Below, in pieces: positions 22,643-61,988 of a stretch of DNA of 64,000 nucleotides. Below the pieces are notes generated by a model. That model was given only the letters and a program-made list of their open reading frames with translations, searched no databases and was not told the DNA's origin. A program made the translations under genes and the position numbers. Position 1 is the stretch's first letter, and each line of letters starts with the position of its first letter. This stretch comes from Nageia nagi (lineage: Eukaryota; Plantae; Pinophyta), in the NCBI GenBank assembly GCA_050084985.1, contig JBITNC010000002.1, positions 23,622,001 to 23,686,000 on the forward strand. Direction: 5' to 3'.

Positions 22643-24450
22643 AGTACGAATTTGTTGTACTTGGCAATTGAATTGAGTTTGAACCATAGCACAAAAAGAA
22701 ATTAATATATGATAAGTTTCAGACTTATGGCGCATCAAGTAAACCCATAAACAATGAGAATGATCATTGATAACATTAAGAAAATAATGTGCACCGGTGT
22801 TGTTGGGAGCAGAATGTTTCCCCCAAATGTCACAATGAAGAAGAGTAAAAGGACGTAGACTTTTATTATTACTCAACGAAAAAGGTAAACATGATTGTTT
22901 TGCTAAATGACAAGCATCATAATGGAGATCCATAACATGAAAGTTGTGAGAAAATGCAGAAACAACAGTTGACAGATGATGATTGGATGGATGACCGAGG
23001 CATTGATGCCATAGATGGAAAGAAGAGTCGCGAGTAGCTGGAAACGTTGTGGTATTAGTGGAAGGAGAATGAAAATAGTAGAGGCCATCGTGCGCATCTC
23101 CCCAACTCCAGTCAGCCTCCTCGTCGACAGGTCCTGAAAAACATAAAAGGAAGGAAAGAAAGTGACAGCATAATTCATGGAATGAGTTATTTTGCTTACA
23201 GATAACAAATTAAAATGAAAAGATGGGACATGTAGTACGTTAGATACAGAGATACGAGAAGTAATAGAAGTGGTGCCTTGGTGCGTTATAGGAAGGGTAT
23301 TACCGTTGGGAAGCTGTACTAGTCTAGAGTGAGGGGTGGGAGCGGGGTTTTGTAATGATGCGAGAGAGGGTGTCATGTGGTCGGAGGCACCACTATCTAT
23401 TATTCATGAATCAGAAGCTAAAGGGAGGTTGAGTGACAAGTTACGTTACTTGCTAGATTGACAGTGTAGGTGGAGTGCTCAACACGAAGCAAAGATAGAA
23501 GTTAATGGTACTCCTCCACAGTGAGAGATGGCAATGGAGGTGTACTTGTAGGTGACAAGGCAGACACCTGAGGAGGGCTAGCATTGGCTTGTGGCTGACC
23601 TAATGCTCCTCAACGATTTTGGAGTTGATATCCCGGTGGATAACCATGTAAGGGCCAGCATGTATCTTCGGTGTGACCATAAACATTACAATGGTCACAG
23701 TAGGGTCTGTTACGACCACGCCCAGCAGGTTGAGTTCCATTGTTTCCTTTGTGCCTTGTTGAATGGTAACAAGGGCTCGCTTGAGGTGAAAGATCCGTGG
23801 AGCATTGCTATGAGAAAATCATTCTTCAAGTTCAGTCCACACTGATTGAGTTGTGTCAGCATAAATGACACTATCGGTTCTGATAAGAACGTTGAGAATC
23901 CATGATAAAACCATGAAATTACATCTCTCCCGAGCTTGGACATCAGAAGGAGGAGAGCTGGGTTTGAACAAAGTGCCATCAACAAAACCCATTTTGTTCT
24001 TAGCATACAAAGCCATCCGGATGGTTCGACCCCAAGTGGAATAATTGTCGCCATTGAGGGGAGTAGAAACCAGAATCATTCTTGGGTTGTCAGAGTGATG
24101 GAGGTAATACAGTGAGGAAGAATCATTATTGGTAGAAGCAGTAGGAGACTGTGAAGCATTGGTGGTGGAGGATGAATTTGTTGCCATGATAGATCTAGTC
24201 AAATAAATGGAATGTTTGCCCAGGAAGCATGGTAAAGTTCTGATACCATGTAAAGTTTTGAAAACTTAATGCATTCTATTAACAAGGAAATGAATATACA
24301 AACAAGGTTACAATGAATCGCATCCCTGATTGATAGGGATGAATAAAGAAACAGCTACGGTGAGACAGATCCCTGATTTATAGGTACAAATAAAGGAAAC
24401 AATGTAATGAAAATAGAAGAAACTCATATTACTCTGCTTCCTTTCTAACG
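22643..24450 (-). mobile_element. 3'-truncated Ty1/copia element C (Ale/RE1-like): 5' LTR, PBS, gag, protease, start of integrase
   Basis: ~200-bp LTR at 24249-~24450; PBS revcomp TGGTATCAGAAC ending at 24248; YYLHHSDNP.MILVSTPLNGDNYSTW..AKNKMGFVDG, IIDSGASDHM, CHLAKQ..LLHCDIWG; breaks off at QQIRT. Confidence 0.9.
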
Positions 24451-37064: not shown

Positions 37065-38716
37065 ATGAAAACCTTAGTTAACTTTTTTTATAGATTTTGA
37101 ATGTATAATTATAATTAAAAAATTCATCATGGATCTTCAAAATTATATAATTTCTCTAAACAAAAAGTAGTTTTATATCTTATTTTATTCATAAAAAATG
37201 GTTAAGTTTTGGAACACACATTAAAAACTCTCTTTTTAAGCCCCTCTAAATATAATTCTAACATAATATCCTAGACTTCATAATTTATAGAATTATTTTT
37301 AACCTTCATTGAAAATCTTAGCTCTTCCATTCTGTTTAATAAAATTTCAAACTATCTCTATGACATATAGAATTATTCAGTAATGGGATCAATAAGCATG
37401 GGAATTTCACATAAGTAAATTGAAATATAAGAGCTTAATGCTTGAATAAATAAAGCATATAATAATTATATAGGGTATATAATTAATCCCTTTTAGATTA
37501 TCACCATAGTATGGTTCTCAAATAAGCTACAATGATAGATAAGATATATGAAAATGTTATATAGTATAAATACTCTCATCAATTCATTTTACTTAATAAT
37601 AGAAGAATTTCATAGCCACTTTTTAAATATTGACTTCCTCCTAGAAAATCCCTATAGAATCTTCAAATATTTCCCATAGAAGAAATAGTTTAATAATTTG
37701 TTTAAAACCTTTTAATCTTAAGATTTTGTTTTATAATAAGGGTAAATTATATTATCAAAAAATGATAGAGGGGTTTTTTTTGGACCTAAAATAAAATTAG
37801 CCACAAAATGGTTCCAAAATAGGAAACTATATTAAGAACCCACTATTCCATAATAACTAGATTATTCACAAATACACATAAAACACTTCAATATGAAAAT
37901 ACCAAATACAAATACCACTTACTAAAGTAACTAAATTGCTTGCACCAATTTGAAGGGGGAACCTCCTAAAGTATAAGTTCTCTTCTCAAATGAAACTATA
38001 TTTCTTGCTTACCCATTACAATAGGGAAGATCTCATATAAATAGTCTTTTGTGACCTTTCACCTTTCAAACCTATTACATGTGGAATAGATACTAATATA
38101 ACATAAATAACATGTTATGGGTTCATAACATTACCATATCCTTAAGCAACCTTTATCCTCAAAGCTTGTACATACCATACATCAAAACATAATAGCCTAC
38201 ACACATTAACATAATCCCACCACATAACACCACAAAATAGCCTATTCATATACTAAGGAGGATCATTACATAGTCGACCTATGTGAAAAGCTTTATCCTC
38301 AAAGCTTTCCAAAATATAAAGTATAATGCCTCCATAAACAATAGAGAGAGAGAGCAAAGAGCCAAGGAATTCAACTCATCTAAAGAAGCCAACAATACGC
38401 TAAATCTAAGTAGGAGCCCATATGAGTATCAAAATCCCACCAAGGTAATGATAATTTTGCTATTAAGGATTGAAAAATAATAAGAATGATCCAAAAGAGT
38501 CAACAAAGAAACCAACATGATGTTGTTACACTCTAAATCCCTTCTATGATGCTCTAAAGTATGTCTGCTATACTCTCAAATCCTGGCATGAATACTCCAT
38601 GAAATCCTACTATTCTACCATGTCCATAGGAATATAAGTGAGAGGGATATCCTCAAACTCTATAACATGCCCCTATAAACTTGAAGAAACTAGATCCACC
38701 TCATATGAACTAATAT

Positions 38717-39210
38717 TGTTAGAATTTGTAATGAAATATTGTGAATATCTAAACTCCTTGTAAGTTCAATTAATCACTTAAAGGATATGTAGATACCTTA
38801 AGGGATTAATTGAATTCTTTATTATGTGTGGACTTTGACCTAACCATGGGGTTAGTTGGTAGGTTAAAGTTAGGTCACACATTTATTGTAACCCTAACCT
38901 AACCCTTGGGTTAAAGGGAGGTTAGGGAGGTGCTCTCAAGCTATAAATAGAGGGCCTCTCCTCTTGTAAACACATCTAAGTTTTGGAGTAAGATTACTCT
39001 ACTAGGTTGTGTAGGAGAGAGCAAGAGAATAGTTGTAAGAGAGGCATAGATTAAGAATAGAGAACTAGTTGTGGATGTACTCCCAAGGAGGGAGGAACCA
39101 CATTATATTGGTGTCATATTGTGTGAATGATGTTCTTAGAATTGTAGATGATGAATGATTTAGCTTCCTAGTCTTGGACCTTGGGAATTAGATCTAGGCT
39201 AATTCCATTA
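38717..39210 (+). repeat. 5' LTR of D (TATA box ctataaata at 38941)
   Basis: Direct repeat of 47180-47673. Confidence 0.98.
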
Positions 39211-39713
39211 AGTGGTATCAGAGCTTGGTGTGGAAGCTCTTCTTCTACATTTTGGAGGTTCTTCATCCTTCTCAAATTTAGAGATCTTAATCCTAATCTT
39301 CTTGGTGAGGTAAATTCAAGAGAAGGTATAACCTCCTTCATATAATCTCCTTCATTTTTTTTAATTTTTGGCTTATGCACTAATGATACTAACATTATTT
39401 GCTATGTGTTGAGCTCATTTTTTTTATTTGGGCAATACATGGCTAACAAAATTGTAATATGATGTTCCTTGTTTGTTATTATTACTTATACTAATCTTTT
39501 TTTTACTTGCAATTTTTACAAATTGCTTAAATTGCTACATTTAAAAAAAAAAGGTTAGTATACAACATTTGAGAAATATTACAATTTTTTTTACTACTCA
39601 AAAGAATAAAAGGAGGACTTTACTTTATTTACAAGTTTTTGAAATACTTACATAGTATTTTTTATATAAGGAGGATTTTTAAATTATCAATTTGTATATA
39701 AATAAAAAAAAGG

Positions 39714-40323
39714 GGATATGCACAAATCGGATATATTGAAAGGGTCTGGGAACTGTTTGACAAAATGTACTCAATTTAATATTTCAGACTCGAGAACTCA
39801 ATTAATAGATAATATGCATATAGAATGTTGAAGCTGTGTTCCTGGAATACATTTTTTTGGCATACATGCATTAGAAAGTTAGTCTAAAATGTAAGCTTGC
39901 AGGACCAGCATTTGGTAATGTGCCTTGTGTATCACATTAAAAAAAACTAGTTTCACTTTTAAGTGATCGCACGGTGACCAGCCTTATTTGATGAGATGCC
40001 TGCGAAGTTTTTCGACTGTATGACTGAACGAGACATCTTCTCATGGAAGTTGAAGACATGGCTTTCCTCGATAGGTAATGACACTATTTCACCAAATGCA
40101 ACAAACACCAGCAGTAGTCCAACCAGATCATTTCACCTTTTCCATCGTCGTCAAAGCATGCACAAAACTGGGAGATTTGGAACAGGGTTTATACATACAT
40201 GAAAGACTCTTTAAAACCGGATTTCTGTCACATGTTGTAGTTTTGAATGCCATGGTAGACATGTATGCAAAACTTGGAAGCGTAGGGAAGTCACGTGAAT
40301 TATTTCATGGACTGCAAGATCGC
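39714..40323 (+). pseudogene. Captured PLS-class PPR gene fragments inside the D leader
   Basis: GYAQIGYIERVWELFDKM (from 39714); LFDEMP; FFDCMTERDIFSW; TLFHQMQQ..VQPDHFTFSIVVKACTKLGDLEQGLYIH..VVVLNAMVDMYAKLGSVGKSRELF. Confidence 0.92.
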
Positions 40324-40474
40324 ATGATGGCCTCCTCCCTCGCCAACTGCGACCTGGTCTCCCTCACGTGCATTGACTAACTCCTCCCTCACCAGCAACC
40401 TCACCTCCCTCTGCCTACTTCTCCCTCGCATGCAGTAGCCTCCTCCCAACCTGCGACCTCTCCTCTACAGGTGA

Positions 40475-40596
40475 GAAGACAGAGTTACATGGCAGACATT
40501 GTTATAGTAACTGGGCCTCCATGTATCGGATAGGTGGAAATGATGGCTCTTGTGTTCTCAAGAGCTGCATGGCGCTATGCATGGTACATGATCCAG
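40475..40596 (+). pseudogene. Captured DUF707-family gene fragment inside the D leader
   Basis: TGPPCIG*VEMMALVFSRAAWRYAWYMIQ matches the plant DUF707 signature PPCTGWVEMMAPVFSRAAWRC.WYMIQ as I recall it. Confidence 0.85.
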
Positions 40597-41452
40597 GCCA
40601 AACTTGGTAACTCTAGGCTCCACTGGATAGATAGAGCTGCATGGCATCGTGCACCTTGCTTGGTCGCCCTTGCATGCCAGCCTTCTGCCCACACCTCCTC
40701 TTCCTCCCTTGCCGACTGCACCTCTCCCTCCTCCCTCACCATCTCATCTACTCTTACGAATGGCCACCATCACCTCCATTGCTGACCTTGGACTCCCTCC
40801 ATTAGCTGTCTTCTAGTGCCTCCATGAAGGTCCTCCTCCTTCCCATGGTCAAGTGTGATGGCTGCCAAACATTTGCAAGTCCTCCTTGTCATTTAATTCA
40901 CTTAGATGCATTAAGTTTGTTTTGTTGACCACCTACATTTTTGCACTTCCAAAAAGCAACGTATGCTCTTCTTGAAGAAAAAGGGGGGTCATAATTTTAC
41001 AACTACAAAGCATTTAATTTTTTTTTTGACTTAAGAGTATTTTTAGTGGTTAAGGTAGACAAAGCATTAAAATTGCATGAAGTAGGGGTATGGGTCTCCT
41101 ATTACAACTTGCACACATATACCTCTTAGGTATTTAATTTTTTTTTAACTTACTTGCTTACAAGTCAAATTGCTCCCATTAAATGCACTTAGGAGTACTT
41201 AGAATAATTCTAATATTTTACTCAAAATTGCATGTTTAAAATTACTAAAAGTGCACATGCAATTTTTTAATGCTAACCTCTTAGCATTTTTTGTAAGCAT
41301 ATTAATTTAGCCTAAGCATGCTATTTTTTAAGTAAATAAGGGAAAATGTTTACTTAAAATGCATACTTATAAGACAAGTCTTAGCATACAATTTTTTTTA
41401 GGGATAAAACTTTAAGTGAAAAGGGGGAAATTGGTATAATTTTTACTTAAAT

Positions 41453-41606
41453 TTTATCTAGATGCTATACTTGTGATGCATGTCTCTTTATCTTGTAAAC
41501 CTTATCTAGATATTGCATGCTAGACTTATGATGCATGTCTCTTTATCTTATAAACTTTATCTAGATGTTGCATGCTAGACTTATGATGCATGTATCTTTA
41601 TCTTGT
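41453..41606. repeat. ~55-bp tandem repeat x3 in the D leader
   Basis: ttatctagat.ttgcatgctagacttatgatgcatgtctctttatctt unit. Confidence 0.9.
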
Positions 41607-41930
41607 TAATGCATAATGCATGATTACTTAATTTTTTTTTAAGTCATGGAATAATGCATGTTATGAATTAAATACTAAGTAGGACTTAGGTCTTTTGTTT
41701 AATTCATTAAGTGCTTGAATATATTGAGCAAAATATACGAAATATAAAAATCCTTTAGGGGTTAGTACAAAACCCATTGGATTTTTTAAGGTTTTTTCAA
41801 GCTTGTGTGGATGATGCAATTTTACTTTACTTTATATTTTTGCACAATTTGCTTATACTTGCAAAAATGCAAATATTGAAAAGTAACCCCTAAAATGAAC
41901 ACATCCGCACGTATTCTTCCACAACATGAC

Positions 41931-42326
41931 TTGTTTGGGGAGCCACAAGGTGAGGACAGGGTAGACTGGAGCCCTTTTAGTCTGAAGAACCGAGTGGTGG
42001 TAAGTCCATCTTAATTGCCCCTAAGACCTCTGTTGGATTGGACATAACTCTATTAGGTGGACAGGCATGTGTGTAGTGATACCACATGTCCGCACGTCCA
42101 TTCAGGGATTATCCTGATAACCTAGGAGGAAAACTGAAAACCTTAATCAAGATAATTAAAATGGTCGGTCCAAGATACGTTGGATCCTTGGAAAATAGTT
42201 GGTACTTCTCCTTGTGAGAGTATATTACTAACCAAGGTGAGCTGGTTGAGGACTGGTAGTACCTGGGCTCCACCTTGCAGGCATCCAGGTGAAGGCCTAA
42301 TTCTATACAAGAAAACAACCCCAACA
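41931..42326 (+). other. Candidate structured RNA domain in the D leader
   Basis: Many complementary segments found by eye (listed under findings). Confidence 0.55.
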
Positions 42327-42451
42327 TTATTCATCTACGGATCATGGTTATAAGTTTGCACATGTGGGACATGTTTACTTATGTTTGATTTGTATAGATG
42401 AAAACTTGTAAAATTTGCATTCTTATTGCATATTTATTTTTTATACAGACA

Positions 42452-45400
42452 ATGGTTGAAACCTTCATACCCAAGCACATACTCGATGGTTCTAACTATG
42501 GCATATGGGAACCTCGTATGAGAGTTGAGTTATAGGTAAGGAAGCTATGGCAGATAGTGCATGAAGATCTAGTTGCTCCTACAGATGAGAAGGCCCTTGA
42601 AATTTACAACTCAAAGAATGAGTTAGCAACCTCAATGATCTATCGTGCAGTTTCAGATGACATCCTTCTCATGATTTCTTCCTTGACATCAGCAAAAGAA
42701 GCTTGGGACAGACTAAAGAAAATTTACCTTGGGTCCAAATTTTCAAGAAGGTTCACCATTCTACAAAATTTGTTGCAGTATCATCAAGGAGAAGATGAAA
42801 ATGCCTCAATCTACTTGAAAAAAATCATTGACCTCAGGACACAACTGGTTGGCTGTGGGTGCAATTAGATCAATGATGAGTTCATGGTCTTCATTATTCT
42901 TCAAAGCCTCTCTATAAAGTTCAGTAACTTTGTCATAGTTATGGAGAATAGGCTTGATGATGAAGAAGATGTTATCTCCCTTAACAATCTTTCTAGACTC
43001 CTTATGAAACATGAGGAAACTTTGAACAAGAAAATGTTGAACATTTCTCCAAAGGATAATAGCATTGCTCTAGGAGCAACCAAAACTCCTTTCAAGAAGA
43101 TGTTCAAACATTATAAATTCAAAGATAACAAATCCTCATCTACCATCAGGAAGCACAGCAACTTCAAGCAAAGGAATAACAAAGCTGGATCAAGTAAACC
43201 AACACCGTAGGAAAAGTTTGATGGGAATTGTAACTTCTATGGCATCTTTAGGCACAAAGAGTATGATTGTCGCAAAAAGAAATTTGCTCAAAAAGGAAAG
43301 GGAAATGCAAATGTGAGAAATTTCAATAATAAAAAGAAGAACAAGCATGCTGCTTCTGTTGCCTACTACTCAATGACTCAAACTATTTCAAATGATTGGA
43401 TTATTGATTCAGGATGCACTAATCACATGTGTTATGAAAAGGATAAGTTTGAAAATTTTCATAAGTACAACAAGGATACAGTTGTGATAGGTGATAATAC
43501 AATCCTTGATGTTCAAGGAATAGGGAATGTGAAGATTCATGGAAAGGCACTTGATAATGTCTTTTATGTGCCTAAGCTAAGGATGAATCTTATCTCTGTA
43601 ATTCAGATTACAAGGACAGGATGCTCATTTGAGTTTACCTCACACTCCTGGTGTGTTAAGAAAGGACTTGCCACTTTGATGAAAGGATCAGTAAAGAATG
43701 ACCTTTATATTGTGGATCAAGTACCTTCAAAAATTTGTCTTGCTACAAATGTGTGTTCAAAAGGTAATCTTTGGCATCAACGATTAGGGCACCTTAACCA
43801 CAAGAGTATTCAAGATATGAAAAATCAAGAACTTGTGGAAGGTTTACCTAATATTTCACCCAAAATTGGTCTTTGTGAAAGGTGCATTCTTGGAAAGATG
43901 AATAGGCAAAAGTTTGAAAAGGATAAGGCAACTCGGGCTACTCATCCTCTTCAGCTTGTGCATTCAGATTTGATGGGTCCATTTCAGACTAAGTCCTTAA
44001 GGGGAGCTTCTTATGTTCTGACCTTCATTGATGACTTCAGTAGGATGACATTTGGTTATCTACTTGAGCACAAGGATCAAACTTTTGATTGATTTAAAGA
44101 CTTCAAGGCACTTGTTGAAAATCAAACTGATTTTAAGATCAAAATGCTAAGATCTGACAATGGGGGTGAATATAATAGCAATGAGTTTAACGATTATTGT
44201 GTTAAACATGGGATCAAGCAGCAATTCACAATCCCATACACCCCTCAGCAAAATGGAGTTGCTGAAAGAAAGAATCGCACCATTATGGAAATGGCAAGAT
44301 GCATGTTGGGTAACCTTCCTAGTTTCTTATGGGGAGAAGCTGTTCATACTGCTATTCACACCCTAAATAGGTGTCCTACTAAAGCAGTTGAAGGAAAAAC
44401 TCCATATGAAGCCTGGACAGGAAAGAAACCTAACATCTCACACTTTAGGGTCTTTGGATGTGATGCATTTGCCTTCATTACCTCAGAGAAAAGAAAGAAG
44501 CTAGATAAAAGATTAGAAAAATGCATCTTTGTGGGGTATGATAATTAGCATAGAGGTTATAGGCTCTACTTCTCATCCCATAAAACAGTCTTTGTTTCTA
44601 GGGATGTCAAGTTCAATGAACTTCCTGAGGATACGACTTCTCATGCTGAGGTGTCTGATTTAAAAGATTCTATGCCTGCACCTAACTGGTTGGATGATCA
44701 TGTAGGGAAGTCACCATAAGAGCAAAATTCTCCAGCTCAGAGAATTACTAGAAGTATGACCTTGAATAAATCCTTATTTGCCAAAATTGATAATATAAAT
44801 GAGCCATCAACATTCAAGGAAGCTTCCAAGCAAGAATGTTGGATGGAAGCTATGAAAGTTGAGTATGAGACACTCATGAAAAATGAAACTTGGGATTTGG
44901 TTCCTTATCCCAATGAGAAAAATGTGATTGGAAATAAATGGATTTACAAGGTCAAGTACAATTTTGATGGAGAAGTTGAAAAATACAAAGCAAGGTTAGT
45001 GGCCAAAGGATTCGCTCAGAAATATGGTATTGATTATAAGGAAACCTTTGCTCCTATGGCCAAAATGCCTACTGTTAGGATAATCCTTGCTCTTTCTGCA
45101 GCTCAAGGTTGGAAAGTTTTTCAACTTGATGTCAAGAGTGCATTTCTCAATGGTGACTTAGATGTTGAAATCTACATGAATCAACCAGAAGGATTTATTC
45201 CAGAAGGAAAAGATTCTCTTGTGTGCAAGCTAAAGAAGTCTTTGTATGGACTTAAACAAGCACCTAGAGCATGGTACAAGAAAATTTTAGGATTCTTTGC
45301 AGATATTGGTTTTTCTAAGTGCTTCTCTGACTCAGATCTCTATGTACTCAATCAAGGAAAAGATGTGGTCTTAATTCTCCTTTATGTGGATGATCTTCTC

Positions 45401-46348
45401 ATAACAGGCAACAATATTGAAATCATCCAAGAGTGCATATCCAAACTGAAGGCAACATTTGAAATGACTGATCTAGGTCTATTGCATTACTATCTTGGAA
45501 TGCAAGTATACCAACACAAAGATTGTACTTATCTTAGTCAATCTAATTATATATCAGACATCTTGAAAAAATTTGGAATGGAGGAGTGTAGATATGCTGC
45601 AATACCTATTTCTCCTAGAATTGTTGTATCACTGAGCTCAAATTCTCAATTGGCTGATGCTACAGCTTATAGGAAATTGATCGATAGTCTTCTGTATCTG
45701 ACTATCTCTCGTCTTGATATTACCTTTGTAGTGAATCTGATGGCACGATTCATGCAAAAACCATATGTTGAACACCTCAATGTTGTGAAGCAAATCTTGA
45801 GGTATGTGGCAGGGACAAAGGATCTTGCTCTTAAGTATTCCAAAGTGCCTTCAATTGTTCTCTCAGGGTTCTCAGATTCTGATTATGGGGGAGATAGAGA
45901 TGATAGAAAATCAACCTCTGCATATGTGTTCAGCATTGGTTCAGGTGCTATCTCTTGGGCTTCCAAGAAGTAACCTACTGTGACTCTTTCTACCATCGAA
46001 GCTGAATATCAAGCCCTATCTATTGCTGCCCAAGAAGCTATTTAGCTAAGACATCTTCTGAATGAAATTGGGTATAAGCAAAATGGCCCATCTCTTATTT
46101 CTTCAGACAATCAATCGGCTATCTCTTTGGCTAAGAATCTTGTGTTCCATAAAAGAACCAAACATGTGGAAATCCAAGCCCATTTTATCAGGGAGAAGGT
46201 TCTAGATGACATCATACACTTGGAGTATTGTCCATCTACTGAAAACTCCACTGATCTATTCACCAAGCCCCTTCCTGAAGCTCAGTTCAGCAAGCTTAGG
46301 GATTCTCTCGGGTTGGTGAAGTTACCCTCAAGGGGGAGTGAAGTTTGA
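42452..46348 (+). pseudogene. Copia D gag-pol polyprotein (~1298 codons, one frame, 8 premature stops)
   Basis: All main ORF-track pieces from 42557 to 46348 share the frame of ATG 42452; [52 protein letters not shown]. Confidence 0.97.
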
Positions 46349-46408
46349 ACCTTTGTTAATGATGACAACTTCACCTCTAAGAGGCTCTTTTGTTGTTGTA
46401 TAGCATGT

Positions 46409-46710
46409 GTTGTACATTCTATACCTCCGTGGTGAGTTTGCTCTGCGTGAGAAACTCGTTGTACAATTTTTATGCTCTATACCTCCGTGGTGAGTTTGCT
46501 CTACGTGAGAAACTCGTTGTACAATTTTTATGCTCTATACCTCCATGGTGAGTTTGCTCTGTGTGAGAAACTCATTGTACAATATTTGAGCATATAATTA
46601 ATATACCTCCGTGGTAAGTTCGCTCTGTGTGACAAACTTGTTGTACATTTATACCTCCGTGGTGAGTTTGCTCTGCATGAGAAATTCATTGTACAATTTT
46701 TATGCTCTAT
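46409..46710. repeat. 58-bp tandem array (~5 copies) in the D 3' UTR
   Basis: ctatacctccgtggtgagtttgctctgcgtgagaaactcgttgtacaatttttatgct unit. Confidence 0.95.
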
Positions 46711-47179
46711 TAATAATCAACACATGTCTATATACAACAGGTGACTATGAGTGATGGCTTGGCATCTCCGTGATGACTTATAGTGCACCATTAATCAGTT
46801 AGTTATAAGATAGCATTATTTGATTCTCTTATTTGAATATATGATGCATCTAACTGATTTTGTTCATGAGTTGCTTGTAGCATGCAGGATCTTCTTCAGA
46901 AATGCAAGTTACTCACCTTGTGAAAGCAAGCTCATGGAGACTCACATGTCAGCTTAAAGTTGATCGACTACTATGTACAGTGAAACCAGTTGTGGTTAAT
47001 GATTGTATTGTAAACCATTTTGTCAAATGGTAATGTAGTGAGTCTCATACTAGTTCTCAAAAAGATTCTCAAATATGTAAATGTTCTCATCTCCACTTGT
47101 ATCTCTATGGAGAGAAACTCTCTCTTACTCTCTCTCTTCTTTCTTCTACGCTCTATCCCAATATTGCATTAAGGGGGAG

Positions 47180-47673
47180 TGTTAGAATTTGTAATGAAAT
47201 ATTGTGAATATCTAAACTCCTTGTAAGTTCAATTAATCACTTAAAGGATATGTAGATACCTTAAGGGATTAATTGAATTCTTTATTATGTGTGGACTTTG
47301 ACCTAACCATGGGGTTAGTTGGTAGGTTAAAGTTAGGTCACACATTTATTGTAACCCTAACCTAACCCTTGGGTTAAAGGGAGGTTAGGGAGGTGCTCTC
47401 AAGCTATAAATAGAGGGCCTCTCCTCTTGTAAACACATCTAAGTTTTGGAGTAAGATTACTCTACTAGGTTGTGTAGGAGAGAGCAAGAGAATAGTTGTA
47501 AGAGAGGCATAGATTGAGAATAGAGAACTAGTTGTGGATGTACTCCCAAGGAGGGAGGAACCACATTATATTGGTGTCATATTGTGTGAATGATGTTCTT
47601 AGAATTGTAGATGATGAATGATTTAGCTTCCTAGTCTTGGACCTTGGGAATTAGATCTAGGCTAATTCCATCA
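47180..47673 (+). repeat. 3' LTR of D
   Basis: TG..CA termini, followed by the TSD aatat. Confidence 0.98.
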
Positions 47674-49099
47674 AATATAAGTGAGATGAAGAGCCTCACA
47701 CTCTACATTATGATCCCTTAAACTCGAAGAGACTAGGTCTTCAAATTCCACAAGAAGAATTTCATCAACAATTGGTTAGTATTATAAGGAATGTTTGAGA
47801 GTTTCCATAATGGTAAAAGTCACAATGGTAGGAGTCACAATATTTGAATGCTCAAATATCTTCTTCTTAGGTTTCCACCAAGGTACATAAGTATGTGGCA
47901 ATCAATTTTCACTTTGAAGATGAAGTTCCATAAGAAATGCTAACCGATATGCCAAATCTAATGTTTGAATATTCTATTTAATTATATCTTTATTGAGTTC
48001 TTCATACAACCCATCAATAAAAAAATCCAAGGATGCCTCCTCATCCAACCCATATTTAACACAAAATTCAACAAATTCAATCTTATATTGTTTATAGGAA
48101 TATCTTTATCGATATGAAATAAAAGTATCTAATTTTAAAAAATTGAAATGAACACCAAATCAATTGTAAAAATTTTAAAAATTTTACTGTATATAGGTAC
48201 CATGAATGACCATCCATATCTAAAATTTTATCCCAAACTGCTATCATATGTAAAAGTTATGAATATTTCACCTTTTCCCCTTTTTATCATAATCTTAATC
48301 ACTAATTCTATCATAAATTAGCCAAAATAATTTGATATGATATGAAATTTTTTTTGAACATGTTTGATACTAATATCTAAAAATTTTATTAAGCCTTATT
48401 GAAATGATTATCCATAAACCTTCAAATTTCAAAAGAAAATTCATTCAAATGTGTGATATATGAACAATTCATTTCAAGCCATCTAAAATAAAATCCTTCA
48501 ACTTTTTAAAACCCACAAGTGCCAGATGTTAAGAATCCACTATTTCATAATAATTAGATTATTCACAAATACACATAAACAACATCAATATGAAAATACC
48601 ATTCAACTATGCAAAACCATTACAAATACCATTTACTAAAGCAACTGAATTGCTTGCACCACTTCGAAGGGGGCACCTCCTAGAGAACAAGTTCTCTCCT
48701 CAAATGAAATTATATTTCTTGCTTGACCATTACAATAGAGAGGGCTTCATATAAATGGCCCTTTGTGACCCTTCACCTTCCAAACCTATTACATGTGGGA
48801 TAAATACTAATAAAATATAAATAACATGCTATGGGATCATAACAATGTTACCCAACTAAAATTGGTAGTAGCTAACATAATTTACCAACAAAATAATTAC
48901 TAACAAAATAAGATCAAATGCTACCCAACTATAACATATTGGTAGCTTGATGCAGCTTGCTCTATCGATTTTTATTACTACAAAATCATCAAATTGTTAT
49001 TGAAATGCATCTGAATTACAACTAAGATGCAACCCAATTGCATCTATATTTTCAAAAAATTATGAGTTTAGGAATCATTTGTTTGGACCAAAGGTGGAT

Positions 49100-59218: not shown

Positions 59219-59229
59219 TTCCTACATAG

Positions 59230-59410
59230 GAAGATCAATTTATATTAAGAAAGCATTACACTTTTTCAAAAAAATACATAAGAAGATCAATTTAGATTAA
59301 GAAAGCATTACACTTTTTCAAAAACAATGCATAAAAGATCATTTGAGATTAAGAAAGCGTTACAAAATTGCAAGTTGATCAATCACTAGATCAAGATATT
59401 AAGGAAGCAT
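59230..59410. repeat. ~51-bp tandem repeat x3-4 in the E leader
   Basis: aagatcaattta.attaagaaagcattacactttttcaaaa unit. Confidence 0.85.
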
Positions 59411-61988
59411 CACAAAAGTATCAATATTATACTTTAAAAAAATGCATATTTGTAACAACAAATTGCAAGTTGATCAAGTTATTAACCAAACCAAGTAACT
59501 AATAAAATTACTTAATCAACATTGTAGTATTAACTAAAGTAATCAAATATGTTAAATTGAACTAATTTGTATTTAAAGTTAACCAACTTGTTTATCATTT
59601 TTGCAATTGTAAGAAACTTGTATAAATTTATGCAAGTACTTTTAATAGCATAGCAATTTGTAGTTTATGTTAGTAGTTTATAGGTTAGTAACTTAGTTTG
59701 TAGTTTCAAGTTAGTAACTTTGTAGGTTAGTAAATTTTCAATTTAATAACTTTGTAAGTTCATTATGTTAGTAGCTTGTAAGTGCATTTATTACCAAATT
59801 AGTTGTATATTAGAATATCTAATCTACTATTATTGGTTAGTGAACTTTACCTTAAGCTTGATCATATGTCTATTTTTAAAGAGCCACTAAAAAACAACAA
59901 CCACACAACAAAGGATTAGTAGTTTCCTTGGTTAGTGGTTAGTTTACATTGCAATACTTTGACAAGCTTATTCAACATGCTCTAACACAAGAGTCCTAAT
60001 AGCTCAAGAAGTAACAAATACAAACTATCTTAAGGAAAAATACAACTCTAGAGGATGAACCATCTCTATGACCATCAACTTATTTGGTTGAGTTGTGTGA
60101 TGATTTTGAAGAAGTCTCATAGTATGGTTTATTTACTTTGTAATTATGGACCACTTCTTTTACTTGACTTATTCTTCTCTCTTCTTTGCCTTCTTCCAAA
60201 TTCGATCCTTTATTTTCTCAATTTCCTTTATTCTCGCAATAAGATGCCTTATTTTCCTATGATTAGAAAACATTGTAAGATAATCCTATTTGTAATTATA
60301 AAAACAAGGTTAGAACAACTTTCTCAAATAAATTAATAACTCACTTAAGGTAAAATTCCTTCTTTTAATTTTTTAGAAAGAAAAAATAATAACTTTGCTT
60401 AAATTTCCTCCTTAGAAAAAAATTCACCCCTTTCAAAAAATATTTAACTCCCCCTTTTTTCAAAAAAAAACAAGGAATCACCCCCACTTTTTTAAAAAAG
60501 AATAACTCCCAAGAAATTAATTTAAATTCCCCTTGAAAATTTTAAGAAAACTCCCTTTTATTTTTTAAAAAAATTACTTAAAAGTCTTCTTTAGAATTCC
60601 CCCTTTAAATTTTTTTAATTAAAGTCAATAGCTTCTAACTATTTAATAAGTTCTCTAAAAAAGAGCTCCCCACATTTAAAAATAATTTTCCACTTTCAAA
60701 AATAATATAATAAATTAACTTTAAAAAGTTATCTCAAAAATATCACAAGTTTAGTAATTGCATTTTAAAAAAAATTTATTATTTCAAGGAGTAAGGCAAA
60801 GTCCCACCAATTCCTTTATTGACTTACAAATCGCTCTTTCATTTATTTCACTTAGCACATTAGATTTTAATAAAATGCAGGTTTCACCAAAATAGAAATC
60901 AAACATAATAAATGCTACACGCACAAGGACAAAAAAATTCTATAAAAAAGAACCCTTGAAGTAAAAAAAGGAAGGGGATAAGATCATATTATTACATATT
61001 GTCATATTCATTTATATAATGTTGGGCCGTTGTGCCACATCTGCTCAACTATTTGGTAGATAATTGAGAAAAAAATGAATCCTCGATATGATCAACTTTG
61101 TTGTTTAGTTACAATATCGAAACCCATGTAAATAAACACAAATATTTCTGCTAAATATTTTTTTATTATTATTCAAACAATAATATTTTAAAAAATAATA
61201 CATATTATTTTAAGAATATAACAACAATTTTGTAAAAACTAATTGTATTAGTTTTTTTAATATATATACAAAAGCATATATATATTATCAAAAAATATTG
61301 TACAATGATGTATAGTAAAAAATTTGCAAATTTTTTAAAAAAATCAATATTAAAAGAAATGCAAATTTGTATTATTATTATATATTAGCAATTTTTTTAA
61401 AAATGCTAAAAAAATGTTGGATTTAAAAAAAAATACTAATCTAACATAAAATATATTAGTATAAAAAGTGCATAACAAAGTAATTTAAAAAAAAAAAAAA
61501 ATGTAACTAACAAGTAGAAGATTGTTAGTATAAACTTGTATGTCAACATGTTATCACACCTTAGGTTATTCTTATACAAAAGGAGCTATTTTATAATAAA
61601 TTTAAGCTTATATGCAAAAAGAATGTTAAAATTAAATTTAGTAAAAATAGCTTGTGTAAGAAAAAAATGGCTTAAAGAAGCTAATTTTACCCCAAAAAAA
61701 ATTGCAAAATTAGCAAGAAATAGGCAAAATTAACCTTCAAAATAAGAGAGAAAAAAAAAAAAAAGAGAAATTATACCTTAATATAATTTTACCTCTCTCA
61801 AGATTGAAATAAGAGTAGAAAAAAGACTCCAACGATGGCTATGATACCACTTGAAAGCTCCTACATCCAAGATCACCTTAGATTGTTCATCTCTATCAAG
61901 AGAGTACTTCACTATTTAGGATCTCATATCTTAGTATTTTACTTATGATTATAGTAGTTCATTAATTAGAATATCAAATTATATTAAA

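Follow-up and report, generated by a model that had tools for sequence, protein, structure and literature searches.

Copia D is a Ty1/copia long terminal repeat (LTR) retrotransposon on the plus strand of a 64-kb stretch of Nageia nagi DNA (contig JBITNC010000002.1, positions 23,622,001 to 23,686,000; hereafter the window). Comparison with related elements indicates that the whole lineage to which D belongs has a long leader between the primer-binding site (PBS) and gag, with conserved signals of the 5' splice-site-like, branch-point-like, pyrimidine-tract and YAG types. The leader is probably an intron that holds a packaging-type RNA. In D, it also contains pieces of PPR and DUF707 genes, which most likely entered through template switching, in which reverse transcriptase moved to co-packaged host RNAs and returned at a AAAAAGGGG motif. 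To the account as a whole, in which a young non-autonomous element has a leader intron with a packaging RNA and acquired its cargo by template switching, we give an even chance. Coordinates of the features are collected in Table 1.

A long leader with intron-like signals in the Copia D lineage

Assemblies in ENA and JGI contain relatives of the reverse transcriptase open reading frame (ORF) of D at 76-92% protein identity, and one scan of metagenome contigs yielded 51 related loci. Those that extend into the leader are L003, L004, L005, L007, L008, L012, L016, L020/L021 and L025/L026. A further member, Copia E, lies on the minus strand of the same window and is ~70% identical to D over gag-pol.

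The D leader spans 39225-42451 and thus measures 3227 nt, in agreement with the PBS-to-gag distance of ~3.2 kb given by an earlier sequence-only reading of this DNA. Minus its inserted block (see below) it is ~1.97 kb long, and the leaders of relatives measure 1.9 kb (L021), 2.29 kb (L003), 2.34 kb (L004) and 2.62 kb (E). ATG triplets are numerous in all of them, with 88 in D and 36-68 in the relatives. Since 36-88 ATGs lie upstream of gag, scanning from the cap to the gag start on unspliced RNA is implausible.

Two donor-like sites are found about 45-100 nt 3' of the PBS. The sequence-only reading had put them at ~39310 and ~39324, and the GT dinucleotides lie at 39310-39311 and, for the second site, 39326-39327. 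The second site is the more conserved of the two: GGTATAA, 60-110 nt 3' of the PBS, is invariant among the five elements whose PBS region can be read (D, E, L003, L004 and L005), where the mean column identity is 61%. GAG/GTAAA, with the slash marking the candidate splice site, occurs ~15 nt 5' of GGTATAA in four of these five. Just 3' of the donor-like sites the GC content drops from ~37-40% to ~23%, and the AT-rich parts of the leader have 23-29% GC.

At the other end of the leader, the same reading had recognised an acceptor, tttttatacag, with 3 nt between it and the gag ATG. The acceptor-like tttttatacAG indeed places its AG at 42447-42448, 3 nt before the ATG at 42452-42454. In 7/7 aligned elements (D, E, L003, L004, L007, L012 and L021) a YAG precedes the gag ATG by 2 or 3 nt, as CAG in D and as TAG in the other six; its AG is invariant, against a mean column identity of 62%. 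The same seven elements have a pyrimidine-rich run and a CTTAY (CTTAC or CTTAT) 22-35 nt 5' of the YAG; the CTTAT of D is 23 nt from the AG. An eighth element that was not aligned, L016, also has a YAG before gag. The leader thus combines the sequence features of a U2-type plant intron, namely an AG/GT 5' end, an AG 3' end, a YTNAY 18-40 nt upstream of it, a pyrimidine tract and a U/A-rich interior, and these splice-type signals hold fixed places in relatives that are only 70-80% identical. No processed (intron-less) DNA copies were found among the family loci that reach the gag start.

The layout of E, which had been described as the same as that of D with neither PPR nor DUF707 pieces, was confirmed on both counts. 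Its signals occupy matching places (PBS 61849-61838, GAG/GT 61792-61791, AAG/GTATAA 61776-61775, tatgtAG 59223-59222, ATG 59218), and tblastn detected no PPR or DUF707 sequence in E. Other PBS-like sites of the tRNA-Met type, with one mismatch each, are present in other elements of the window at 24248 (-) and 13994 (-). An ATG, which is a candidate gag start only, follows the site at 24248 within ~20 nt, and a long leader may thus be confined to the D/E lineage.

A structured RNA domain upstream of gag

The 3' part of the D leader contains a stretch of ~600 nt (41742-42340) that is 75-81% identical in nine relative loci (L003, L004, L005, L007, L008, L020/21 and L025/26), a conservation at least as high as that of the coding region. 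RNAalifold predicted 118 base pairs in this domain, and 95.4% of cells form standard pairs on the predicted structure. Fifteen pairs change on both sides, as compared with 6.0 +/- 1.9 in column shuffles, of which 0/500 reach 15; when pair partners were slid by 1-3 columns, only 0-6 such changes remained. By these measures the aligned domain shows compensatory base-pair changes.

An antisense ORF of 71-94 codons, which in D measures 73 aa and is also open in L003, L005 and L021, runs through the domain. A coding role for it was rejected, since variability is lowest at third codon positions (0.155 versus 0.194 and 0.217). No Rfam family matches the domain, and nhmmer found no homolog of it in E at E<=10. 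A 16-mer from the domain gave 10 chance phage matches among viral contigs, all without homology. In three relatives, the first ~55 nt of the domain (a hairpin, ~GGGGTTG...AAAACCC) are duplicated ~80 nt 5' (L003:4970-5022, L004:6770-6824 and L008:73-124).

We propose, by analogy with retroviruses, that the domain serves packaging or dimerisation. Were the leader an intron, the domain would be present only in unspliced RNA, in the way that retroviruses restrict packaging. The fuller version of this proposal, in which a conserved 2-3-kb spliceosomal leader intron carries a packaging RNA in the D clade, sorts message from genome and offers its middle as a landing zone, remains tentative, and we place it somewhat short of even.

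The same evidence might be read in a different manner. The leader could be left unspliced and the structured domain could serve as a platform for internal ribosome entry or shunting, with the GT and YAG motifs acting as RNA-RNA contacts or protein sites. The position of a conserved base-paired domain ~110 nt 5' of the gag ATG would suit such a role, as would the weakness of GTATAA, the most conserved donor-like motif, as a 5' splice site. However, four canonical intron signals are conserved at the spacings expected of an intron, and E retains them without the structured domain. Plant intron borders typically show a composition step such as the one at the donor-like sites. Moreover, the YAG keeps neither a fixed frame nor a fixed distance to the ATG (2-3 nt), and because this distance varies a fixed-frame stop codon or a fixed start context is an unlikely explanation of it. 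We therefore regard an unspliced leader as improbable.

Some points nevertheless weigh against the reading of the leader as an intron with a packaging RNA. The donor comparison comprises five elements only, and the retrieved relatives are all degenerate copies on metagenome contigs of other plants, none of them a close sister of D. We take GTATAA to be a weak match to the U1-complementary consensus, and it is perhaps conserved for another reason. Finally, E possesses the splice-type signals but not the domain.

Host gene fragments inside the D leader

The sequence-only reading had reported several PLS-PPR pieces and a DUF707 piece in sense orientation within the leader, and Pfam matches on the plus strand bear this out. 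A PPR match lies in 40075-40377 (E 1.3e-7) and a weak one within 39705-39776, while Pfam gives no match for the piece at 39978-40076. The DUF707 match comprises the first 24 residues of 40534-40782, corresponds to profile positions 197-220 of 299 and is above the gathering score. All four recognisable gene pieces are sense-oriented. D holds host-gene-derived sequence (PPR and DUF707) between its LTRs, which is a feature of gene capture by LTR retrotransposons.

D 40009-40215 is colinear, at 78% nucleotide identity, with a decayed PPR fragment at L004:2029-2252. This colinearity shows the piece at 39978-40076 to be continuous with the PPR piece at nucleotide level, and pieces B and C are therefore better regarded as one gene fragment with a small deletion and a frameshift than as two captures. 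The 86-residue PPR piece matched 12,895 library proteins at E<=0.001, and the best ones listed match in 5-15 stretches each, which is typical of PLS-class repeats. No near-identical PPR donor stood out in a search of representative proteins. A 101-aa ORF across the junction of the PPR and GC-rich parts had no homolog in the length band of the protein search.

PPR-like sequence was also noted near two family copies, outside their leaders. At L004:1949-2252, the decayed PPR fragment (78-83% nucleotide identity to D 40009-40215) is antisense, ~2.6 kb 5' of the 5' LTR of a family member, in AT-rich DNA without a long ORF. At L021:14303-17576, a PPR-like, internally repeated region lies ~1.5 kb 3' of the 3' LTR of a family copy and may be a PPR gene or a PPR cassette.

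The cargo block is absent from E and from the corresponding place in every relative retrieved; by D-specific we mean absent from relatives at 70-88% identity. Its base composition also sets it apart. The ratio of observed to expected (o/e) CpG reaches 0.61 for the PPR part and 0.30 for the GC-rich part of the block, whereas gag-pol has 0.12 and the AT-rich leader 0-0.11. These higher values imply that the block has spent far less time in the mutational regime of D, and that it arrived recently.

In the relatives, the middle of the leader is hypervariable and carries different, unrelated GC-rich inserts: a 210-nt minisatellite in L003, ~350 nt in L004 and ~900 nt in L005. None of these three inserts has a Pfam match, and the inserts of D, L003, L004 and L005 show no mutual similarity beyond chance. 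The non-homologous inserts in other members suggest that the AT-rich middle of the leader repeatedly tolerates foreign or expanded sequence. The earlier idea of a conserved leader intron that carries variable host sequence, a cargo bay, is therefore upheld in part. Lineage-wide signals and a hypervariable middle speak for it, but recognisable host pieces occur only in D.

Borders and origin of the inserted block

On its plus strand, the 64-kb window holds just two copies of the nonamer AAAAAGGGG, which resembles a polypurine tract; they lie at 39707 and 40978 and bracket the cargo. The left copy is exactly at the border and the right copy is ~100 nt past the GC-rich part. The D leader keeps a weak family-type resemblance to those of E, L003 and L005 up to 39710-39711, the point at which PPR piece A starts, and the L021 leader is again homologous to D from 41262 onward. 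AAAAAGGGG forms a 9-bp direct repeat around the block, but it is also a typical motif of family leaders: similar A-run/G-run motifs, resembling the D polypurine tract, are found mid-leader in E, L003 and L005, in one to a few copies.

These borders point to the PPR and DUF707 pieces being one block of ~1.26 kb (39716-40977) that arrived as a single recent insertion in an unconstrained part of the leader. The block is probably specific to the sub-lineage of D, and it looks passively tolerated rather than functional. Most likely, reverse transcriptase switched templates to co-packaged host RNAs and re-entered at the AAAAAGGGG motif, a mechanism that fits the sense orientation of all pieces and their mosaic make-up. 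We note, as a point against this mechanism, that the 9-bp flanking repeat would also fit the target-site duplication (TSD) of a DNA-level insertion or of one mediated by a long interspersed nuclear element (LINE).

We considered whether the block is an ordinary secondary insertion in D or its immediate progenitor, with AAAAAGGGG as its TSD and with no relation to the Copia life cycle or to an intron. Its source could be a LINE-inserted chimeric processed transcript, a fragment of a transposon without terminal inverted repeats (TIRs), or repair filler. Such an origin would account for a 9-bp repeat placed as described, for the absence of the block from all relatives and for its high CpG retention, which marks a recent arrival. 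It would leave several features unaccounted for. Apart from the five A's that belong to AAAAAGGGG, the block has no poly(A) tail, and no Helitron-type ends were seen on inspection. Neither repeat search nor word-7 self-BLAST found TIRs at 39716/40977, so the mark of a Pack-MULE or other TIR transposon is missing. In addition, a motif that is typical of family leaders may be a preferred re-entry point and not a duplication, and uniform sense orientation is what RNA-templated capture would be expected to produce. On balance we hold a secondary insertion of this kind to be unlikely.

A later insertion bounded by its own TSD/TIR was the outcome that the sequence-only reading had set against an intronic bay. 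The 9-bp direct repeat leans toward it; TIRs were not found. Taken together, the borders lean towards a single later insertion in D rather than a bay that was filled repeatedly. A miniature inverted-repeat transposable element (MITE) at 40877-41687, suggested by a 37-nt inverted repeat (81%, E 0.003), was rejected because the L021 leader is homologous to D from 41262 and no TSD was seen.

The sequence-only reading had further suggested that the intron protects gag-pol translation from the cargo, and that the cargo may act on PPR genes as a source of small interfering RNAs (siRNAs) or as a decoy. The first suggestion does not hold for D, whose gag-pol has eight in-frame stops; as this gag-pol is already dead, an intron is not needed to explain why cargo is tolerated in D. 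The second, that intronic cargo is maintained as an siRNA source or decoy against PPR genes, appears very improbable: the lineage does not conserve the cargo, which contains no inverted duplication or hairpin by repeat search and self-BLAST, is frameshifted and includes a stop. PPR genes are so numerous, with the fragment alone matching thousands of library proteins, that frequent passive capture of PPR sequence is to be expected.

Anatomy, coding state and age of Copia D

The remaining anatomy of D is that of a Ty1/copia element. Pfam domains appear in the order Retrotran_gag_2, Pol_BBD, gag_pre-integrs, rve, SH3_retrovirus and RVT_2, and the integrase thus precedes the reverse transcriptase. 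The PBS motif TGGTATCAGAGC is equally placed in E, L003, L004 and L005.

D is a defective, non-autonomous copy. An autonomous element would have an intact gag-pol ORF, and that of D is interrupted by in-frame stops at 42533, 42866, 43208, 44090, 44546, 44717, 45971 and 46043. At most of these positions the relatives have sense codons, and the differences are mostly transitions. By contrast, the two LTRs differ at only 2/494 positions, both transitions. Since this likeness predicts only a handful of substitutions per 3.9 kb, yet eight stops are present, D is most likely a young copy that was already defective at insertion and was moved by proteins supplied in trans.

The age may be understated by LTR identity if methyl-cytosine decay dominates, because the D LTRs lack CG and CHG sites. 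The LTRs (38717-39210 and 47180-47673) and 39225-39710 contain zero CG and zero CHG, although an LTR would be expected to have roughly 10-15 of each; the CHG o/e of gag-pol is 0.78.

Some further observations concern the element and its surroundings. Codon 28 of gag (42533 in D) is an in-frame stop in D, E, L003 and L016, which share only 70-80% identity, whereas four other elements have a sense codon there; the pattern suggests parallel decay by repeated transitions at a single site. The tandem array of a 58-nt unit at 46408-46710 belongs to a type of hypervariable 3' region that has been described in plant LTR retrotransposons. Direct repeats at 37829-38130 and 48526-48844, 87-91% identical and ~10.7 kb apart, flank D, which seems to be nested in repeated DNA of greater age (a duplication, or the LTRs of an earlier element). 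Each LTR holds a 50-nt palindrome (38763-38816 and 47226-47279) that matches the Rfam family MIR7993 with 30 bits versus a gathering score of 100, probably by chance. An Rfam scan of 38000-48500 gave nothing beyond this far-sub-threshold match.

Table 1. Features of Copia D and the leader of Copia E, in window coordinates
Feature	Position	Strand	Evidence or remark
TSD AATAT, left copy	38712..38716	.	5-mer repeated directly outside the other LTR
5' LTR of D, TG...CA, 494 nt	38717..39210	+	pairs with 3' LTR, 2 transitions apart
PBS TGGTATCAGAGC, initiator tRNA-Met type	39213..39224	+	exact match
Donor-like site 1, GAG/GTAAAT (GT 39310-39311)	39307..39315	+	GAG/GTAAA in D, E, L003, L005; lost in L004
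Donor-like site 2, AAG/GTATAAC (GT 39326-39327)	39323..39332	+	GGTATAA invariant in 5/5 elements
AT-rich leader part 1, 23-25% GC	39333..39706	+	composition; zero CG/CHG
AAAAAGGGG, left bracketing 9-mer, polypurine-tract-like	39707..39715	+	word count in window
PPR piece A, ~21 codons, sense	39714..39776	+	Pfam PPR E 0.0036, below gathering score
PPR pieces B + C, ~350-nt fragment of PLS-type PPR gene, frameshifted, sense	39978..40332	+	Pfam PPR E 1.3e-7
C/T-rich, GC-rich stretch, 52-60% GC	40333..40482	+	composition; no match in Pfam or relatives
DUF707 fragment, sense, in-frame stop, Pfam core 40534-40605	40483..40608	+	Pfam E 6.8e-6
C/T-rich GC-rich stretch, then 33%-GC tail (right part of block)	40609..40977	+	composition; none in relatives
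AAAAAGGGG, right bracketing 9-mer	40978..40986	+	word count in window
AT-rich leader part 2, ~100-nt direct repeat at 41448-41609	40987..41741	+	repeats; L021 leader aligns from 41262
Family-conserved structured RNA domain, non-coding	41742..42340	+	comparison and covariation
Branch-point-like CTTAT (42422-42426), pyrimidine tract and acceptor-like AG (42447-42448)	42422..42448	+	alignment of relatives
gag-pol of D, single frame, 1299 codons	42452..46348	+	8 in-frame stops, frameshift-free
Five tandem copies of ~58-nt unit, between pol and polypurine tract	46408..46710	+	repeat search
Polypurine tract AAGGGGGAG	47171..47179	+	directly abuts 3' LTR of D
3' LTR of D	47180..47673	+	pairs with 5' LTR
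TSD AATAT, right copy	47674..47678	.	adjoins 3' LTR of D
Leader of E, 2619 nt, 24% GC, 36 ATGs	59219..61837	-	PBS and gag ATG positions

Proposed life cycle and comparison with known systems

In the account that we favour, all members of the lineage have a 1.9-3.2-kb AT-rich leader between PBS and gag. Splicing would remove the leader, thereby freeing the message of 36-88 upstream ATGs and allowing gag-pol to be translated. The unspliced RNA would serve as genomic RNA, with the structured domain in the intron as its packaging or dimerisation signal in the D clade. During reverse transcription, the enzyme would switch to co-packaged host RNAs and re-enter at an internal polypurine-tract-like motif, leaving the ~1.26-kb block.

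Capture of this kind has precedents. The maize element Bs1 carries pieces of three genes, and the accepted mechanism of capture is aberrant template switching in the particle (PMC13317346). In a survey of maize, 425 intact elements hold gene fragments and none of them more than one standard gene (PMC2774510). D resembles Bs1 and the other cases of LTR-retrotransposon gene capture in maize, rice and sorghum in that unrelated host fragments lie in sense orientation between the LTRs of a non-autonomous element. Unlike the surveyed maize elements, D holds pieces of at least two genes (PPR and DUF707), and in contrast to the known captures its pieces are short and broken, code for nothing, and sit in the leader instead of contributing to a hybrid ORF.

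Splicing also has precedents in plant LTR retrotransposons. In the Copia elements EVD and BARE1, partial splicing produces shGAG RNA and sorts one transcript into different fates, with a conserved 5' splice site as the regulatory node (PMC5580714). The Ogre intron (cited in PMC6317226) lies between the gag-protease ORF and the ORF for reverse transcriptase, RNase H and integrase. As in those systems, partial splicing in the D lineage would sort one primary transcript into RNAs of different fate. In contrast to these introns, both of which fall within the coding region (the shGAG intron in protease, the Ogre intron between ORFs), the candidate intron of the D lineage would be wholly 5' untranslated and end 2-3 nt before the gag ATG. 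A non-exhaustive search of the literature found no description of a leader-filling intron that ends just before gag in a Ty1/copia element.

The order of PBS, splice donor, structured RNA domain and gag is also like that of a retroviral leader, although this is an analogy only. In retroviruses the major splice donor is upstream of the packaging signal Psi; Gag is made from unspliced RNA, and the donor is used for env and accessory mRNAs. Unlike in retroviruses, splicing in the D lineage would be needed for Gag itself.

The cargo of D is in itself the product of an ordinary kind of event, and its value is as a clean, datable example of host RNA capture, CpG-rich within a CpG-free element. It may bear on the spread of intronless PPR genes by retroposition. 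If the leader is spliced, it would add a third location of regulated splicing to the two known from plant LTR retrotransposons, the Copia protease-region intron and the Ogre intron, and splicing would explain both how Gag is translated despite dozens of upstream ATGs and how messenger RNA is distinguished from genomic RNA. If true, this would be a retrovirus-like solution of a type not described for plant Ty1/copia elements.

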